Of a stretch of 64,000 nt of DNA, positions 23,801 to 34,640 are shown piece by piece. The notes beneath the pieces were generated by a model. The model was not told the DNA's origin. It made no database searches and saw only the letters and a list, made by a program, of their open reading frames with translations. Source of the DNA: Zygnema circumcarinatum SAG 698-1b (Eukaryota > Plantae > Zygnematophyceae); contig CM074807.1 of the NCBI GenBank assembly GCA_037447605.1, positions 2,924,327 through 2,988,326 on the forward strand, given 5' to 3'. The translations under genes were made by a program, and so were the position numbers. Positions within the stretch are counted from its first letter, which is position 1. Each line of letters starts with the position of its first letter.

Positions 23801-26057
23801 AATTAGTCAGTTTGGGAGAAACATCCACACTTTGAACTTCAGCTCTGCTTTTGAATCCATCCATCTCATCGCAAAAACCCAGTCAAAAAGTTCGCAACTT
23901 GAATTTAAGTTTGTAAAACAGGAAGTCAAACACAACTGAAAAATGCTATGACAGGGACCACGGCTTGGTTCTTGGAAATCCTGTTTTGTTGCGATAGACA
24001 AAACTGAGGTTCGAGTAGAAACCTTGGCCATATTTCGGTTACAGACACCCAGTTCGGCATGGAGAAGGTCAATTCTAAGGTCGGAGCGATCATAATTTAA
24101 ATGTACTATGGTCACAGTTTTTCCTTCTAGTCTCCCTCCCCAACCTTCCTGTGCAGATCATGAGGTCTGGCCCTGCACCTGAGGTCGCGAACTGCTTCCT
24201 TATGCGCCCCCTGCTTGGCCTTCACGTTGTTCATGTTACTCTGCCAATACCTGTGCACGCCCTGCCTCTCTCAGCACCATAGCAGCAAATGAGAGTGAAT
24301 CCAAACACTACTGAATGCCAGAATTCAGCCGCTGCCCAATCGAGAGGGGCTCTAATGGGCACAGACAAAACTAAAACTGCTCTGCAATACAAAAGCAGAG
24401 GGAAGAGCACACACTTGATGCAGCCGGCGTCATCACCAGTGACGAGCCAATTTTCGCTGTTGCTCCACACCATGCTGCGAATTGCCACATCATGAGCCTG
24501 CATCACCATCGAATGATAAACCAAAATATCATTTGCAGTCGGTTCAATGTCCGATGTAGAACAAGCTTTTGTATTATTGATATCCTGCTATGGCATGCGG
24601 GAGGCACAACAACGTTGTCCAGATAGTTTTCTTGCTATAAGTCGTTTCGCTGAATAGCTTCAGATCAATTTTTTTTAAGAGGTGGCAATTCCTTGCCAAC
24701 CTGAAGAATCATCTCAAAGTTGAATGATTGCCCATTCCACAGAGTGAACTCTCCACTCTGTGAGCCAGTGATGAGCCGTCTGCCGGTTGGTGTCCACTGC
24801 ACAGGGCAGGCAGTGACAGAAACTCAAAATTTTGGAACTTCTCCATCAAAAATAATAGCAGAAGGCCCATAAAGAGTATCTCTTTACATTCTTGCCAACA
24901 ACTTACTCTCAAGGGAAACAAAACACAAATGTTGTCCCATTTTGAAACTGGAAGTATAACACACGCAGGAATGCACGCATGAAACCTACACTTCATGAAC
25001 ACAAGCCTATAACCACCGCACATTGGAGCCGCCCTGACTTACCACTACTCGATTGATTGAACAACGAACTTTATTGGTGGAGGCATGCACAAACTTTGTG
25101 CAGAAACTTGTGGAAGGATTGTCTGGATATGCAACGGGAGGCAAAAGCTGCACGAACCCGCGCACACTTGTTAGGGAGAAATATGCGAATTATGTCTTAT
25201 TGTTCTGTTATTCCGTTCTTTCAGTGCAAGTGCACAGAAATCTATGAATCGCACGAATACCATGAATGGCAAGTTTGATATTGCATTGATTCTTTCATGA
25301 CCCGCTCGTATCCAGATAGTGCTTTAGATAGAAAAAAGGTCCCATAAGCTAGATTTGATCGGCTTATCCATTTTCTTAACCATAGTCGATTGAAGCATTT
25401 ACATTCAATGCTGCACCCGCTGTTGGTTGCAATGTTGAACTGTCCCGAATGTCCCTCTCATGCATCCGGGTCTGCACAACGAAAAACACACATCATCATG
25501 CATCAAGCAGAAGGCAACGGCAAAAATGGATGCTTGGACAGACTCTTGACTTTTTCATCTCATCGTCGTGTTTCAAGTTTTTTAAACAAGAAGAAGAGTC
25601 ACTGTTGGGCCCGAACGACTCAAAAAGTTTCCAAAAAAGAGACCAACCTGCATGAGCTTCACAACGGGAGGGCTATAATCCACGGTGCGCCGCTGCACAG
25701 GCTTGCGCATCCTCTTCCCTGCCGCCCAATGCAAAGCTCTCACACTTCAACAGATTGTGCACACAGGGGGCATACTGCCTAACACGCGGTTTCTGGCGAG
25801 ACACAACATTTCAGGTGGCCGGCTGGGTACTTCAAGTCTGCATTTTAATCTTTTGCGTGCAAAAATCGATATGCAGGAAACACCTAAATTGCCATAACTT
25901 GGAAAAGTCTGAATAATGATCCCATGCCATGGAAACTGCTGAATGGTTGCGTCCATTTACGGAATCAGAACAACTCACCGTCAGACATAGCAGTCCCAGG
26001 TCGCCCATAGTCGCCGCGCGATTGATAAGCAGACTCATGCGCATATTCGGAATACAT
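20884..26057 (-). CDS. FY: FY / WDR33 (Pfs2) polyadenylation factor: WD40 repeats plus Pro-rich tail
   Basis: ATG 26057 MYSEYAHE; [15 protein letters not shown]; [27 protein letters not shown]; [32 protein letters not shown]; [12 protein letters not shown]; [21 protein letters not shown]; [22 protein letters not shown]; [13 protein letters not shown]; Pro/Met/Gly-rich last exon. Confidence 0.97.
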
Positions 26058-26284
26058 GGCCTGGCCGCTTTTCTACAATGTGCTGCAGCTATTGAAAAAG
26101 AACACTCGGAGGGAACTTCAACTCCTTCACCGTAGTTCAATGCCAACTTTCCCCCTTCTCCATAACATAGCTCATCAGCACACCGCAAGCCCTCCTCCTC
26201 CGGCAGCCATGGCCATCAGCCAGCCTCTCAGGGGCATGCAGATGCTGGCCATGCCATTTCCATGCCCATCGACGGCCAAGGGAT

Positions 26285-26412
26285 GGGCATGGATGGACCC
26301 ATGGAGGCATGGACCCATGGGGAGGCATGAACCCATGGGGAGGCATGGACCCATGGGGAGGCATGGACCCATGGGGAGGCATGGACCCATGGAGACATGG
26401 ACCCATGGTGGC
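26285..26412. repeat. CCATGG-rich minisatellite (about 18-bp unit GGCATGGACCCATGGGGA); continues at 26588-26610 and 28479-28562
   Basis: About 7 tandem units read directly; further units flank the hAT element on both sides. Confidence 0.92.
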
Positions 26413-26610
26413 ATGGACCCAAGCGATCGAACCAGACACGGAGCGCCGGTGACAACAGGCCGAAGGTAGCGCCGGAACGAACTTGTTGCAAACAAAATAG
26501 ATAAGCAATTTCTGTCTACCATCATAAGCTTGCAAGTGAACGCAGTGAGTTTATGCCCCCCATTTATGCCCCCTGGGGGGCATAAACTCATGGAGGCATG
26601 GACCCATGGA

Positions 26611-28478
26611 CAGGCCTCTTCAAATAGGGGAGATCCCCTAAATATCGTAAATAGCTTATTTATGTAAGATTTTGAGATTAGTTTACGTGATTTCAACTTA
26701 AATACCACACAAGCCCCAAAAAAGCATTTTTTTGGTTAAAAACAAAAAGGAAATGAATTACATTTGCAACGACGATAGCAATGATGTATATGAACTTTAC
26801 TTGTTGGTATAACAACACGGCTTTAGAAACTGGTGCAACCTCTTCGACTCTTATAGATTGGTAAATTTTACCAATCAATTAGAACAACTGTGCATTTGGC
26901 AATCACAACATATAGTTGCTTATTCAAAAACCCAATTGCACTGAAACTTTGTAGATCCAATCCTAAGCTCTCTATTTCCTTTTCCATCCATCATTAATTA
27001 CTCCAAGTATCACTTTAGAATCCATCATAGTCTTGAAATTTCCTCACAAAAACTCTATTCCAAATCATAACCTCTGAAATTCTAGGTGTAGTCACAAAAG
27101 AAAAACTGAAATAGGAACTAAAATTAGAAATGAAATGAAAAATGGTCTCACTCCCTTAGGAGTTTTAGGCTGATCAAGACAGCTATAGAAGTGATGCAAA
27201 CTACTCAAAGAGACCCTCGAAAAGTGTTCAAACTATCAAACCGTTTGCAGTGAAGAATGCCTTCCAATGAAAAGTGTGTCAACCTCTTTCGAAACTCGTC
27301 TTTCTCCCATCCAATTACTGAAAAATCAGACTCGACGGTAGCAGTGTTGGGAAATGATGAAGCAAGGTCTCCACTCTCCACAAAATTCTCGTCCGTACGT
27401 GCACGGTTTCGTCCGTACAGTCCATATTTACGTGTTTTTACAAGGAAAATTCTACTCTCACACCTTTTTTGTCTACACACAAACCTTTTTTCGTCGGGCA
27501 GGTTCTATTTTAGAAAAAAAAAGGATTAACAACGAAAAATGCTTTTTTCATTCCTTTCTGGAATCGATACAAACCTTTTTCCGTCGGGCAGATTTTACCC
27601 CTGATTTTGTTTTTGGAGAGGAAAAAATCGGCTTGCCCAAATCCGCTGGGAGCAGAAGATCCGTTCGCCACGAGATCGTTCACGGGCGTGCGTTCTTTAC
27701 ACGTGCGGTGAATCTCCACCGTCAACTAACTCGCAGATCGCACCATACCAGATCATCGTTCGATCTGCAGTTGGGCTCGGTCCCAGCGAATGGCACGGGC
27801 CCACGTGTCCCGCCAAATCCGGCTCAAAGTGGGTCCATACAAAAACTGTACGGTCGCAGTTTCGAGGAAAGGCGAAATACTGTACATTGAATTCCTGGAC
27901 CAATTATAATTTGCCACGTGATTAAGGGTACACGTGGCAGATGGTGATTGGCTGTTAGTTGGCGAGCCGCCGCAGGCTGGCCAGTCAAGCTCATATTTTG
28001 TGGAGATCTCGGGCCGAGGGACGCGCGCTCTAGCACGTGCCAGCCGGCTTTGGTGGGGCACGTGGGCACGTGCCATTCGCTGGGACAGAGCCCAACTGCA
28101 GATCGAACGGTGATCTGCCGTGTTGCGATCTGCGAGTTAGTCGACGGGGGAGATTCAATGCACGTGTGAAGGACGCACACCCGCGAACGATTCTCGTGGC
28201 GGACGGATCTTCCGCTCAGCGGATTCGGGCAAGCTGATATTTTTTTTCACTCCAAAAAAAAAAATCAGGGGTAAAATCTGCCCGACGGAAAAAGGAGTGT
28301 GTATAGACAAAAAAGGTGTTAAAAAAGCATTTTTCGATTTTCTAAAATAGAACCTGCCCGGCGAAAAAAGGTCTGTGTGTAGACAAAAAAGGTGTGAGAA
28401 TAGAATTTTCCTTTTACAAAACCAAGTTAGGGGACAGTCCCCTATCTTAAGCCGAAATCCCCTATTTGAAGAGGCCTG
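26611..28478 (-). mobile_element. Non-autonomous hAT-superfamily DNA transposon (internal-deletion derivative)
   Basis: Perfect 21-bp TIRs CAGGCCTCTTCAAATAGGGGA (26611) and TCCCCTATTTGAAGAGGCCTG (ends 28478); 8-bp TSD CCCATGGA on both sides; transposase C-terminal remnant FPNTATVESDFSVIGWEKDEFRKRLTHFSLEGILHCK at about 27205-27400(-). Confidence 0.92.
27444..28411. mobile_element. Foldback MITE (Mutator-like long TIRs) nested inside the hAT element
   Basis: About 390-bp imperfect inverted arms starting GGAAAATTCTACTCTCACACC and ending GGTGTGAGAATAGAATTTTCC; flanked by direct repeat TTTTACAA (27436-27443 and 28412-28419); no coding capacity. Confidence 0.88.
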
Positions 28479-28866
28479 CCCATGGACCATAAACTCATGG
28501 AGGCATGGACCCATGGACGCATGGACCCATGGGGACATGGACTCGTGGAGGCATGGACCCATGACATCCGTGACAAGCGTGACGATCGAGCCCAGTTGGA
28601 TTTTACAGTCATTCCAGACCGTCCGATGCCCATCGAACGGTCCAAACGCGGCACCGTTACGTGGCTGGCGGCGCCCTTGACGGCCCAACCCTATTGCGGT
28701 TGCGCGAAACGGGAGCGCCCGCTGCCCTTCCGCCGAACAGGAGGGGGCGGGCCCCAAACGGGCGCCGTTAGCTGCCCGTCCCGCGCGACCACGAGGCGAG
28801 GCGAGGAGGTCAGCGTTCCTGCCTGCAGGTGCGTGGGGATTGTTGCAGGCGCTGCAGGGCCTGGCT

Positions 28867-31346
28867 ATGGCGGCTCCTGCAGGAGGGGACTTCCAGGGGA
28901 GGCTGAGGGATCAAGCAGGAAATGGGGACTTTAGGGTTCATATGCAGGGAGAGAGGGATGTGCAAGAAAGAAAGAGAGGGGTTTGGCTCTCTTGTATGTC
29001 TGTTGGGCGTCTCGCGGGTAGCGAAGGTCCGCATTATGCGACTCTTTGGCCGCTCTGTAATTCGATTGGAGTTAGGTATTGATTAGCTTCGGAAGTATCG
29101 GATTTGTGCGCGTCTGATAGTATTCTCAGGCGTTTGATCCCGGAATGGCACAGGATTCTCGAAGGCGCCACCTTGGCATTGTAGCGCGAGGGGAATGTCC
29201 TGCTGTTGTTGCCAATGCGCGTAAACCGTGAAAGTGGTGAGATTGCGTATTCAGAGAGTCTTGTTGTCTCTCAAATGTCACAAGAAATACCGTTCTTCTT
29301 GTAAGCTATTTTGAACTTCCATAGAGAACGTTATCTTCCCTTTAAACGATACGATACGGCAAGAGGATTTGAAACCAACCACCAAACCCTCTAACCTGAC
29401 CTAGTAGAGGCCTGTTTTTTTCCTGAAGCCGCCAATATTCCGTGCCACCTCACTTTGCACAAAATAATGAAGTCTATTGGAACTTGCTGACGCATCTCCT
29501 TAACTCCCTTTACAATATGATTCTTCGACTTCAGAAATTTCTACAAACCTCACTAGCGCATAAGGAGTGACCTGCTGATTGTGCGATTTCTGCCTACAGA
29601 ACTTCAAGGTGTTGAATCTAGAGCTTTGGTTCTCCTCGGCGGCGACGTGGAGCTCAATCCCGGACCAGTGAGGTCCACTAAAGCCTTTTTCTGGCTGTAG
29701 TGTACTTCAGGATACTCGCACGTGGCCTTGTGAATCCAGATCGTCTTACAACCGTTCTTGTGCATTGTGATAATTAGTACTAGAGATTTTTGCGTCTTGC
29801 TGTTTTTTGCCACTTTTTCGAGCGTCTTTTCAAATGGTGAAAACCTGTTTTGGGCTGTTCGGCCTCTTCAACAATGAAATGCACCCTGTCTAAGGCATTT
29901 TAAGGGAGATTTAAGTGGATTGTGTTGTGCAAGCTGAGATGACGCCAAAATTCTGACATTTAGGGAGACAGCTGGCTTTCTTTTCTTGACTGTTTGAGTG
30001 CACTGCCTCTCTATCTATTAGTCGGTTATTGTCAACTTTAATCGAGCTTGTCCAGTGTCGCTGCTACTTCAAATGTTAATGTGCTCTGTGTTCGTGGTTG
30101 CACAGGTCTGGGTGCAGTATGCACTACACTATAAAGGAGAAGCTGAGAAGGTGGGTGACGCACTGGTGCGGCTAGAGGAGCAGTGGCAGGAAGTTCCGCG
30201 AGAGGTGTTGGTCAATTGGCTAAAAAAGGTGCTCATGGCTGAGCTGGCAAACACCCTTCTTCGGGTGGATGCCGTCCAAGTCAGCCTGGAAATGCCCTTA
30301 GGAACACCAGTGTCAAGCGAAGGCTTACAGAGCTGTCTTTCACAAGGCTTTGTCAACTTGGCCGTTGTATCACCCCGTCCCAATGGTGAGCACCTCTGTT
30401 CCAATGAGTTTTGGATGCAAACATGGGAAGCAATTGCAGAGCACCTACTTTTAGGAAGAAAGGTTTTCCTGTCCTCTTTCGTTGACCAATTGAAGGCAGT
30501 GTAAAGGGACCATAGCGTGTGGTTTCAGAATAGCGGCAACAGCAGCAGCTGCCAAGGAGGGAGCTTTACTTCCATTTTTATTTGTCCCCGTATTGATGTT
30601 ATGAATTGTGCCTTTGTTAAACATTGCTTCCTTGGTTGCGGTTGTCTGCAGCGGCTCCCCTCTCTGCGGTACATCCTCCACCTTACTCTGCAGCCACCAC
30701 CTGTTCTCAAGAGGTAGTGCTTGAGACCACAAATTTTGGCCGGCCATGGGTCTCACCTTCAAGTTTGCCTCCTGCCCCATCCTTCACAAATCTGAATCAT
30801 GCCATGGATACCACCACCTTTAGCACTTCGAGTGGGCAGCCAGTAGGAGTTCGGGGGACAGACGGAGGGCAGAAGGTCAGCCTAAGTTCAGGAAGCGGAT
30901 ATGGGATGGGAGAGAAAAGGAAGAGGCAAGAAAAGTGGACGGAACATGAGACACTTGTCCTGATAGCTTCGAAGCAGAGGGAGGAGGAGGAGCATATGTC
31001 TGCACTGGAAGGAGACAGGCTGAAGACTGCGGCTGAGCGGTGGAATCGAACTGCTGAAATCATGCGGAGCAGAGGAGTTGTAGATAGGGAAGGGAAGAAT
31101 TGCGAGGATAAGATTACAAACTTGAAGAAGGACTGGGGTAAAGTGAGAGACTGGAATATGAGTCGTGGCGGAATAACTCAGTATTGGGAACTCTCTATCA
31201 CTGACAGGAAGCTCAATAAGCTTCCTGTGAACATGACTGAGGCGGTCTTTGGAGCCCTCGAGGAGATGGAGAACAACAGAGTACGCCCCCTCATGACTTC
31301 CCACCAAGACACTCTCCGAAATTCAGAATCAAGCATCGACACATGA
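28867..31346 (+). CDS. Trihelix (Myb/SANT-like, SH4/ASR3-type) transcription factor, predicted as the downstream part of a 2A-containing polyprotein; exons 28867-28935, 29130-29220, 29600-29667, 30106-30385, 30652-31346
   Basis: Last exon: KWTEHETLVLI..ERWNRTAEIM..KNCEDKITNLKKDWGKVRDW..YWELSITDRKLNKLP. All four GT-AG introns (194, 379, 438, 266 nt) are phase-compatible (0,1,0,1) and give one open frame. Domain call is strong; upstream exon choice is moderate. Confidence 0.8.
29600..29667 (+). other. Exon encoding a 2A/StopGo-like peptide (xLQGVESRALVLLGGDVELNPGP)
   Basis: GGC GAC GTG GAG CTC AAT CCC GGA CCA = GDVELNPGP at 29641-29667, an exact match to G-D-[V/I]-E-x-N-P-G-P; acceptor ctacag at 29599, donor gtgagg at 29668. 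Confidence 0.88.
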
Positions 31347-31965
31347 AGCCATGATGCTTCGAAGAGAGTTACAAAGTTTTGTATATTAGGCATGTCAGTT
31401 CGGCCTGCGATTGGTGCTGCTCACTAACTGGGCAGTCATTTATTTGAGCGGCTGGTGCTTCGCCACATCAATAAATTTTGAAGCGTTCATTACTTTCATT
31501 GGCTATAGCCCTTTTAGTGTTCAATTTTTTTGATCGAGCGGAAGAGCTTGAATGTTGGTAATCTGATGTTGCGTCGGAAAACGTAGACAAAGCGACACAT
31601 GCTCCGCGTTAGAATTGATTCATGAGCCTTTTGTTTCTATCTTTGCAGTAGTACAGAACTGCTAAAAACAGAATAACATCTGAACTCTCCATCAACACAT
31701 CAGGATTTGTTGGCTCAGCCATCCGTGTTAATTGCCAGAAGCACCATCTCTATTGGAAGCAAAAACAGGACCAAAATTGTAATAAAAGTCGTGGCATCTT
31801 CTTTGCACAAGGAGCTGCAATCTGCAGTAAAGTACAATGAGCTCCCACTTCAACATCCTGTCATACAAAACGAGCTTCAAAAATATCCTAACGAGTCCCT
31901 CTGCACCATGGTCCAAAATACCAGGACCCGTCCCACCCTAAGCAGGCGCTCACAGCATTAACAAA

Positions 31966-34073
31966 TTAGTGTTTGGCGGCTGCTTTGCTCCGCAAGTACC
32001 ACGCAGCCCCAACGCAGAGGAGAGCTGCAGCGCTGCACAAGAGGGTGACCTTTGTGCTCCTCTCCCACGTGCTCGGGGAGGAGAGCCACGGCAATTTTGG
32101 CAGATCTTCGGATTCCACACACTTGCAGTTGGCACCGCAGGCTTCCATCCGTTTCGTTTGTGCGACTTCCTGGGCTGCAGGGTCCAGGTCCAGACAACCT
32201 CTGCAAAGTCCAGCATATAAATTTCAGCATATTCACATCCGAAGAAAGGGGAGGACTCCAGAGCTTGTGCCTGAGATGAATGAAGAGGTGGTGTGGAGAA
32301 CAAAAAATGAAATCTTAGTTTGAAGGAGTGACTACATCACAACACGTTCAAGGAATGTCCGTGAGCTCTCGACACTTTGTTTTGTGCCAACGAAAATGGA
32401 GCCCTTAATGCATCCAAATACAATGAGATAGTAACGCCTTCCAGCATGACCACTTTCTCCATTACCTACAACGCTGGGAACGTCCAGAAAGTAGCCGCTT
32501 ACCTCCATAGCTTGTCAATAACCTGCCCATTCTTGAACGAATCCAATAGGGCAGGGATGTCGTCGGGCGTAACGTAGCCATACCTGCATAATAAACAGTC
32601 ATCCTTAATAAACAAGTAAATTCTCAAAAAGACTAGTGACAAAATATGGCTGGTCAAATGCAGAAGCTGCAAGCTCAGGTATACTTACTAGAAACATGTT
32701 CTTACTTTCAGTACTACAAAGTTAAATGAATGAGCACCTCCGACATGGCTCCACAGATATGGCCAACTACAGCCGATCAGTGAAAGACTCACCAGTCGCC
32801 TGCTTGAGATCCATCAGGTCGTGTGGTATACGCTATGATGTTACCAGCGTATTTGTGACCTCCAATATGGGAACATGGCCACACTGAACCTTGAATGCCT
32901 CTACTGGTGAGCGCCTCTCTAAACTTATCCACAAGAACAGGTCCGCAGACTCCACATCGCATATCATGGCTGGTGTGGGCACACACGAACAATTGGTATC
33001 CTTGAAGTGGTTCACTCTTCAGCTTCTTCTCAGCGGCTCCGATCAATGCTTCTTCGACAAACCGCTCAGCATCCTCAGGAGCCAATCCCCTGCAAAAGGC
33101 AGGCCCCAATTGTGATATCTTGAACTCGTTACTGCCATCTTCAGTCTGGGATGATTCTGTACTCAGCTCTACAAATGCGATTTCAGATGCGAGTATTTGG
33201 GCAAAGGCGGGGGCGCGGAATACATACACCACTGCACTATTCAGGCGTGGGGCTAAGCGCAGACAGCAACTCGAACCTATTAACTTAAAATAGACGAGCA
33301 CAAATTGACGCCCCAAATGTTTGAAAGCTTGTAGAATAAGTGTGAAGAGAAAGTGGTGCTTAAATTTAGCATGAAGGAAGACAAAAAATGTAAATATAAA
33401 AAGCGGTCCGGCCCTTGCCAGCTTCTGACACAACGAGATGGCCTTGCATGCACTCACGTGTATTTAATCATGTCGGGCAGAACCAAGACATCACCACTGC
33501 TACCGCCAGCTCCAGTCCCCTCCACGACGGTGAACTTCACCTGCAAACATGTCGAAGGCATCTTCAATCTCTAGTTCATGAACTCAAAGTCATGACCTTC
33601 ATGTATTATCTTCACAGCATAACTAAACGGAGCTTCCAAGCCAACATCTCCTCGCCATTAATAGAGGAAAGAAGATAATTGATGCGACTTTTGCAGTTTC
33701 TACATTTCAATAGTCTCAGCCTAGTCGAGCCTGTCCTGTCGTCAACCAAATATGTACTGATTAAACAAAGAAATAGCGAGAACGGGATCGACGAGCCTCC
33801 ATTTACCTTCTTCAGTACATCCTTCTTTCGCTTCTTCAGCGCTTCAGCAAGCTTTGCCGACAGCGGGTGAAACTCCGGATCCTCCACGTTCCTGGGCCAC
33901 TCGGCCACGCTCTTCTCCACCACCACAAACAGCTGAACATTATACTCCTTCACCGAACCTACAAGCTTATCCTTGTACATCTCCGCCCTCTCGAAACCGT
34001 GCTCCTTTGATGACGGCCCTGACGGAGGCAACTGCGGGTCTCCTTTTACCCCTTCTCCATTTTCTGCCGCCAT
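31966..34073 (-). CDS. Sucrase/ferredoxin-like protein (Aim32/Apd1-type thioredoxin-like [2Fe-2S] ferredoxin) with C-terminal membrane anchor
   Basis: HGFERAEMY..LVGSV..WP; FVCAHTSHDMRCGVCGP; CSHIGGHKYAGNII; DW|YGYVTPDDIPALL; tail TWERSTKVTLLCSAAALLCVGAAWYL; ATG 34073. Confidence 0.93.
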
Positions 34074-34640
34074 AGCGATGCTCCTCACGCCTACCGCCCT
34101 CCTGCAGACTCTAGAACTAACCCTAATGCTCCTCGCCCTCGCCCTCCCCCTCCCACTCCCAGCGGCGCAGAGAGAGGCTGAGACGGACCCGGCCCTGCAA
34201 CAAGCTCCGACCGCGCACGCGTTCATGCGGCCCCTCGCTCTCTCTTTCTCCCCGTCCCCTCCAAGCAGACAGACCGCCCTGCAGCTGCGCTATATGTATG
34301 CTGTTGCGCGTCGCATTCAACGTGCCCTTAGCGGATGCACGGACGTCGCATGGAGCCGTTAGCCACGTCACCGCCGCGCGCGCGCCAGCGTGCTGCCACG
34401 TGCCGGCCTGGGACTGGGCAGGGCGCCCGCTCTCGATCGGACCGTAGGTCCGTATGACTGTCCGTATTGATACTGTACGATCTGACGGCTGGAAAATGTA
34501 CGGCGGAAGTTGGGCCGGTAGGGCCAGTTGGGCTGACGCCGACCTAGTCGACGCATCGCCCAATCAGAGATCGACACACGTGGACAGTCACAAATAAGTC
34601 CTAATTTTTTCGACCGACCGACCGACCGACCGGCCGATCA

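Follow-up and report, generated by a model that had tools for sequence, protein, structure and literature searches.

Does a host gene of a streptophyte-type alga begin with a working StopGo (2A) peptide, and what might such a peptide do there? The question is raised by a 64,000-nt stretch of the genome of Zygnema circumcarinatum SAG 698-1b (assembly GCA_037447605.1, contig CM074807.1, positions 2,924,327 to 2,988,326; hereafter the window, in whose coordinates positions are given), in which a trihelix-type transcription factor gene encodes GDVELNPGP at the end of a very short exon. StopGo is viewed as a viral and retrotransposon device whose cellular use is rare, and here a canonical 2A stands at the very start of an algal host regulator gene whose closest relatives with a name are trihelix factors of land plants. 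From assembled transcripts, relatives and codon comparisons, we consider it probable that the leader of the encoded protein is an active N-terminal StopGo element. If active, the element would provide a natural test of what an N-terminal 2A is good for (throttled translation, release of a micro-peptide, or a pair of isoforms), would supply algal and plant engineering with a native 2A, and would be an instance of a recoding signal borne as a self-contained exon.

The 2A exon in the spliced transcript

The motif can be read directly in the window DNA, where GGC GAC GTG GAG CTC AAT CCC GGA CCA on the forward strand encodes GDVELNPGP with RALVLLG directly before it; no second NPGP occurs in any of the six frames across the 64 kb. 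As the initial annotation had described, the motif forms the 3' end of a 68-nt AG/GT-bounded exon, which is preceded by ctgcctacag and followed by a GTGAGG donor that begins immediately 3' of the Pro codon. Calculated from the window's own six-frame amino-acid frequencies, D(V/I)ExNPGP is expected by chance 7e-5 times per window and ~0.07 times over ~63 Mb of genome, or 0.004 times with the preceding G. The motif also occurs in further species (see below), which rules out chance altogether as the source of the match.

RNA evidence comes from assembled contigs of public runs, all assigned to one organism, of which four were compared with 28700-31600; such contigs give no isoform ratios. Contigs of runs X1 and X2, from two studies, join 29236 to 29600, 29667 to 30106 and 30385 to 30652, each across a GT..AG intron (Table 1). 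Word depth in X1 and X2 is far higher over exons than over introns, indicating that these runs are RNA and that the 68-nt exon belongs to the mRNA. Two of the joints had been proposed in the initial five-exon model (29667/30106 and 30385/30652), and these are borne out. The donor used upstream of the 2A exon (GTGAG from 29237) instead lies 16 nt 3' of the proposed one at 29220, and the proposed 28935/29130 splice appears in none of the contigs, which follow the genome without a break across 28710-29236 (X2) and 28998-29236 (X1).

The mRNA built as 28710-29236, 29600-29667, 30106-30385 and 30652 onward contains a 354-codon open reading frame (ORF) from ATG 29215 to TGA 31344-31346. ATG 29215 is the only ATG opening this 354-aa ORF in the observed mRNA, an in-frame stop lies at 29182, 11 codons 5' of it, and the predicted protein begins MRVNRESELQGVESRALVLLGGDVELNPG/PVWVQY. 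Spliced contigs, ORF and the pattern of substitutions in the core together place the 2A motif in a translated mRNA ORF, in frame with the downstream trihelix coding sequence as had been claimed. The 2A is N-terminal: a 29-residue leader (M1-G29), ending LVLLGG-DVELNPG, precedes a predicted product of 325 residues from Pro30, matching the size forecast for the Pro-initiated factor. A conserved domain follows right after the motif, and its first in-frame ATG comes only at residue 44 of its exon; as no in-frame ATG lies earlier, the domain can be translated only by ribosomes that have passed through the 2A.

A contig of run X4 (28734-30384) has the last intron removed and introns 1 and 2 kept. 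When intron 1 is kept, the ORF from ATG 29215 ends early within it. About 0.88 of the words are present in four other runs, as if these shared the intron-retaining form of X4, and retention of introns 1 and 2 may be regulated. Runs X8-X10, labelled as the same species, contain nothing of the locus, which is not evidence of silence.

Table 1. Features of the trihelix gene and its 2A exon, in window coordinates.
Feature	Position	Strand	Basis
Exon 1, mostly long 5' leader, 5' end approximate	28710-29236	+	Colinear contigs of X2 (28710-29236), X4 (from 28734) and X1 (from 28998)
Start codon (29215-29217) and first 22 coding bases (MRVNRES and base 1 of E8)	29215-29236	+	ORF, orthologue start
Intron 1, 363 nt, GT..AG	29237-29599	+	Joint in X1, X2; kept in X4
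2A exon, 68 nt, phase 1 in, phase 0 out, encodes (E)LQGVESRALVLLGGDVELNPGP	29600-29667	+	Sequence and RNA contigs
Core StopGo motif G-DVELNPGP	29641-29667	+	Matches (D/G/C/N)(V/I)ExNPGP of PMC12846837
Predicted unformed bond Gly29/Pro30	29662-29664/29665-29667	+	Position within motif
Intron 2, 438 nt, GT..AG, donor GTGAGG	29668-30105	+	Joint in X1, X2
Exon 3, conserved N-domain VWVQYALHYKG...SPRPN, 93 aa	30106-30385	+	RNA contigs, Pfam search
Intron 3, 266 nt, GT..AG	30386-30651	+	Joint in X1, X2, X4
Exon 4, coding part, stop 31344-31346; 3' untranslated region extends beyond 31464	30652-31346	+	RNA contigs, ORF
Myb/SANT-like (trihelix) DNA-binding domain	30930-31181	+	PF13837, residues 93-176 of ORF 30654-31343

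Relatives and selection on the motif

We sought relatives by word-indexed protein searches and by searching 1.84 billion representatives exhaustively with HMMER. The 230-aa C-terminal part of the window protein matches one cluster, P0001/P0002, at 73% identity; these proteins of 361 and 363 aa come from RNA contigs that lack introns, present in seven runs (SRR8128902-08) of a single study, and whole-protein identity to this orthologue is 77%. P0001/P0002 carries LVLLAGDVELNPGP and starts M(AM)TLSRESDLQGVPNRTLVLLAGDVELNPGP-VWVQY, also given as M(AM)TLSRESDLQGVPNRTLVLLAGDVELNPGPVWVQY. Its ORF opens at the counterpart of ATG 29215, and six codons 5' of its first ATG there is an in-frame stop; start position, leader length and motif are all shared with the window gene.

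The HMMER search returned only two further proteins with the domain that follows the motif (hereafter the N-domain), P0004 and P0003. P0004 is an ORF called on L002, an 839-nt unspliced ENA metagenome contig. Upstream of its SWVQY exon, L002 reads cag/GA GGT GCA GAC AAA AAG CTA CTG CTC GCT TTA GCA GGT GAC ATT GAA GAG AAT CCA GGA CCT/GTGAGA, a predicted 2A exon of 62 nt that encodes (G)GADKKLLLALAGDIEENPGP and ends LLALAGDIEENPGP/GTGAGA. As in the window, the donor stands right after the Pro codon, and the exon is entered in phase 1 and left in phase 0. An 80-nt intron separates it from the SWVQY exon, and because the two exons stand in different frames, splicing is required to join them. If an ATG that has a GTGGGT donor, 77 nt upstream, served as the start, the leader would measure 24 aa. 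Compared with the window core, V is replaced by I and the free residue L by E, both changes lying within the consensus, to give DIEENPGP. P0003, the product of a complete ORF on a EukProt Trinity transcript, is 49% identical and contains the N-domain. Its residues 1-16 include GDKDPSSGP, which is identical to GDVELNPGP at G, D, G and P (4 of 9 positions), with D/E in addition; this may be a decayed 2A or chance.

Conservation of the motif, one of the checks suggested at the outset, is seen in P0001/P0002 and in L002, while P0003 has the N-domain and no 2A. NPGP is found in none of the other 139 hits (143 proteins in all), and a protein-pattern scan of JGI metagenomes returned no relative. The exon 3 product is 83% identical to that of P0001, 67% to P0004 and 57% to P0003. 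Across the three species with the motif, L-13, L-10, G-8 and the D, E, N, P, G and P of the core are invariant, and the core changes only at V/I and at the free position (L/E). The first 15 residues of the leader are looser, with 60% identity to P0001/P0002 and no recognisable counterpart in L002.

We compared codons between the window gene and the P0001/P0002 RNA orthologue (351 codons), between which synonymous sites are saturated (proportion of differing synonymous sites, pS, 0.83). The nine core codons show six synonymous and no non-synonymous differences. Over the 15-residue 2A the corresponding non-synonymous proportion (pN) is 0.093, similar to that of the Myb domain (0.086) and of the N-domain (0.109) and below that of the linker (0.21). 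This comparison, of the dN/dS type proposed for the exon in the initial annotation, comes out in favour of constraint, and the sequences indicate selection for the motif at the amino-acid level across three deeply diverged species.

The mRNA leaders are also alike. That of the window gene is ~500 nt long and contains 8 upstream ATGs, and two short upstream ORFs (uORFs) overlap the main start in another frame, 29145-29231 and 29195-29224 (MSCCCCQCA). The leader of P0001/P0002 (L014 1-543) measures 228-543 nt with 6-14 upstream ATGs, and a uORF at 426-566 overlaps the start. These uORF-rich leaders in both species suggest tight translational control besides the 2A.

Comparison with known 2A peptides and rival explanations

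The StopGo core has been defined as (D/G/C/N)(V/I)ExNPGP, with G preferred before D and with a free position that favours L and E among others; the upstream hexapeptides are L-rich and LLLLSG-like, end in (A/S/C)G when p12 is D, and contain residues essential for activity (Li et al. 2026, PMC12846837). DVELNPGP (window and P0001) and DIEENPGP (L002) both fall within this consensus, p15 being L or E. The upstream hexapeptides are LVLLGG in the window, LVLLAG in P0001 and LLALAG in L002, and by eye against the published logos each has the G before D and an L-rich helix with 3-4 Leu at -14 to -10. Active eukaryotic 2A-like peptides have Leu enriched at -13 to -10 with the helix ending at -10, and 3-6 leucines accompany lower protein output; cellular 2As were proposed to be expression regulators (2026 preprint, PMC13405545); the leaders of the window gene and its orthologues have 3-4 leucines in that stretch. 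2A peptides are active in plants (PMC12846837), and a report on the 2A of FMDV (foot-and-mouth disease virus) describes its use in the green alga Chlamydomonas (PMC3427385). No natural StopGo came to light among plant viruses in a 2026 survey (PMC12846837).

Viral 2As such as FMDV F2A (PMC12846837) agree with the algal element in the core octapeptide, in having G ahead of D and in the class of L-rich hexapeptide, which ends AG in the orthologues and GG in the window. They separate two sizeable proteins within a polyprotein, whereas the algal upstream product is a 29-aa leader. A likeness in position is offered by the NLRs of the sea urchin Strongylocentrotus purpuratus, where 14 of 87 proteins bear a 26-aa N-terminal 2A that is active (Roulston et al. 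2016, PMC4981915). Like the algal element, these stand in a cellular, non-transposon gene at an extreme N-terminal site (26 aa, against 24-31 aa in the algal leaders), with a D(V/I)ExNPGP core and a predicted Pro start downstream. In contrast, the sea-urchin leaders have a strongly hydrophobic character and serve as signal sequences too, whereas the algal leaders are acidic with a short hydrophobic core. The algal case further differs in its host, in its trihelix product and in having the 2A in its own mini-exon, and the algal 2A is known from sequence.

The 2As of ORF1 and ORF2 in APE-type non-long-terminal-repeat (non-LTR) retrotransposons (Odon et al. 2013, PMC3708506) are likewise N-terminal and consist of an L-rich helix followed by (S/C/A)G-D(V/I)E(L/Q)NPGP. 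The algal gene does not belong among them, as no APE or reverse transcriptase lies downstream, the gene is unrepeated in the window, and the orthologues share introns. A DNA pattern combining a 2A with a GTRAG donor found 11 loci in JGI metagenomes (L003-L013), all retrotransposon-like and unrelated to the trihelix gene. These encode LLLL(S/C)GDIE(L/Q/R/P)NPGP followed by VS or VR, some going on as TLNIRS, which resembles the start of an endonuclease domain, and their samples look animal-associated. The 11 loci give no support for a widespread 2A-exon cassette. A retrotransposon-type 2A is a plausible evolutionary source of the exon, and the algal 2A probably stems from one.

Several observations weigh against an active StopGo element. 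The window has GG at -9/-8 before D, in place of (A/S/C)G, and 2A-like motifs of some cellular genes have been found inactive (PMC3708506). P0003 starts MAAGDKDPSSGPSTAT-WVQY without a 2A motif, which indicates that the protein can do without the 2A. The RNA support consists of contigs, one of which (X4) keeps introns 1 and 2; the gene model of L002 is predicted from the contig itself; and the regulatory role of the leader is one that we infer. The identity of all nine core residues to one orthologue is only modestly unlikely at 77% identity (0.77^9, ~0.1), and the weight for constraint comes from the motif being kept in three lineages, from changes only where the consensus permits them, and from the conserved exon structure.

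In one rival reading the leader is translated and conserved while the Gly-Pro bond forms, the motif serving, for example, as an interaction site or as a stability or localisation signal whose likeness to a 2A is coincidental or vestigial. The inactive motifs of earlier surveys, the GG at -9/-8 in combination with the dependence of activity on upstream context (PMC12846837), and a homologue that functions without the motif all favour it. We nevertheless think it rather unlikely, since all eight positions of the consensus are retained across three lineages with changes only at the two consensus-free positions, since the G before D and the L-rich stretch at -13 to -10 needed for activity are kept as well, and since no other known function demands this exact pattern. 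Still smaller is the chance that a 2A captured from a retrotransposon or RNA virus persists in the exon as a neutral relic, now functionless. Non-LTR retrotransposons do have a close N-terminal LLLL(S/C)GDIE(L/Q)NPGP, and the motif is missing from the distant P0003. A functionless relic is very hard to reconcile with the lack of non-synonymous core changes while synonymous sites are saturated and with retention of the motif in the third lineage, L002, and neither a reverse transcriptase or endonuclease domain nor a repeat lies in or beside the gene.

A leader used in two ways, as in the sea-urchin NLRs, would send unskipped chains to a membrane or organelle and skipped chains to the nucleus. 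Its 24-31 aa at the extreme N-terminus, compared with 26 aa in the NLRs, and its hydrophobic LVLL core fit this idea. However, the leaders are negatively charged (net -2), their hydrophobic run covers only ~7 residues, the highest Kyte-Doolittle mean over nine residues is 1.9-2.2, and the downstream protein is a DNA-binding factor; dual targeting by the leader appears unlikely on these features, and we give it a slim chance. As for the upstream peptide of the initial annotation, an ORF from ATG 28867 or 29145 through joints 28935/29130 and 29220/29600 is AG/GT-bounded and in frame on paper, and was expected to yield a product of about 75 aa, or 47 aa from ATG 29145. That expectation fails: both joints are missing from the contigs, use of the 29236 donor brings TGA 29229-29231 into the frame of 28867 and 29145, and the orthologue ORF starts at the site matching ATG 29215, which leaves a 47-75-aa upstream product scarcely credible. 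Exons 28867-28935 and 29130-29220 are ruled out by the RNA contigs.

On the plant side, conserved-peptide uORFs and nascent-peptide arrest sequences act in cis on transcription factor mRNAs. The algal leader is similar to conserved-peptide uORFs in being a short conserved peptide before the main protein, in its expected action in cis within the ribosome tunnel, and in standing on a regulator's mRNA that also bears ordinary uORFs. Unlike them, it has no stop codon or re-initiation and is in frame with the main ORF. In the mechanism that we propose for an active StopGo leader, the nascent 29-mer in the exit tunnel would keep the Gly29-Pro30 bond from forming, the leader would be freed with no stop codon involved, and some of the ribosomes would continue into the 325-aa factor from Pro30. 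The balance of skip-and-continue, fall-off and read-through would then set how many initiating ribosomes finish the factor, making the leader an in-frame, stop-less counterpart of a regulatory uORF atop a uORF-filled mRNA leader.

A Met-Pro start exposes an N-terminal Pro after removal of Met by methionine aminopeptidase. As a plain Met-Pro start would also yield an N-terminal Pro, the Pro alone does not account for the leader. The leader is short and acidic and appears unlike a signal peptide, which makes a regulatory use most likely, and judged by these features it probably gates translation of the factor. More tentatively, and as a possibility that we would not yet call probable, streptophyte-type algae may have domesticated StopGo as a stop-less in-frame leader that gates transcription factor synthesis, with a ratio of skip-and-continue to fall-off or read-through that conditions might tune. 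No earlier case would then be known in which a host (non-transposon) gene of the plant lineage makes natural, selected use of 2A recoding, and such gating would form a new class of translational control alongside uORFs.

Cellular 2A-like cases are known from NLRs, teleost RapGEF, and death-domain and ankyrin proteins, and in the green alga Haematococcus 2A-like peptides are reported from the ORF2 proteins of retrotransposons (PMC13405545); others are already listed for Archaeplastida (PMC12338488). The initial claim that no 2A-processed cellular gene had been described in the plant lineage has to be narrowed in view of these entries. It may stand for trihelix genes and streptophyte host genes, for which we found no paper on 2A or StopGo in the literature, the supplementary tables of the 2A surveys lying outside that search.

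The trihelix gene and its surroundings

The C-terminal domain matches Myb_DNA-bind_4 (PF13837) with an E value of 7.9e-10 and 39.5 bits against a cut-off of 27, and the orthologues score 36.7 and 39.3 bits. The nearest named relatives in the exhaustive search are Marchantia MpTRIHELIX20, 1 and 32 together with Riccia, Ginkgo and Adiantum proteins; similarity to these land-plant proteins is confined to the DNA-binding domain. By sequence similarity, the assignment to a trihelix-type, plant-lineage gene holds, in agreement with the initial annotation.

Among the 1.84 billion representatives, the N-domain is found solely in the window protein, P0001/P0002, P0004 and P0003. It has no Pfam match and no usable match in the ESM Atlas, and an AlphaFold2 model from a 4-row alignment reached a mean confidence (pLDDT) of 57.8, too poor for a structure search. 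Aligned across the four species (P0001 residues 30-123, P0004 12-106 and P0003 15-108), the domain has 41 invariant positions.

Pfam shows Myb_DNA-bind_4 only, with no reverse transcriptase or endonuclease domain, and a repeat search of the window found none covering the gene, the nearby repeats lying upstream of the transcript. The gene belongs to the host and not to a transposon; it is nuclear and spliced and occupies a single locus. Rfam gave no match in 26000-33000.

Upstream of the 5' end of the gene, 27435-28420 forms a foldback of nested inverted arms of 62-150 nt that are 80-94% complementary (27435-27517/28338-28420, 27528-27627/28242-28341 and 27675-27824/28042-28191), and which looks like a foldback or miniature inverted-repeat transposable element. 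Tandem 18-nt (and 8/16-nt) repeats, GGAGGCATGGACCCATGG, stand on both sides of it, at 26271-26627 and 28483-28584. The next gene downstream, on the minus strand at 32789-34226, encodes a Sucrase/ferredoxin-like protein (Suc_Fer-like, PF06999, E 1e-23).

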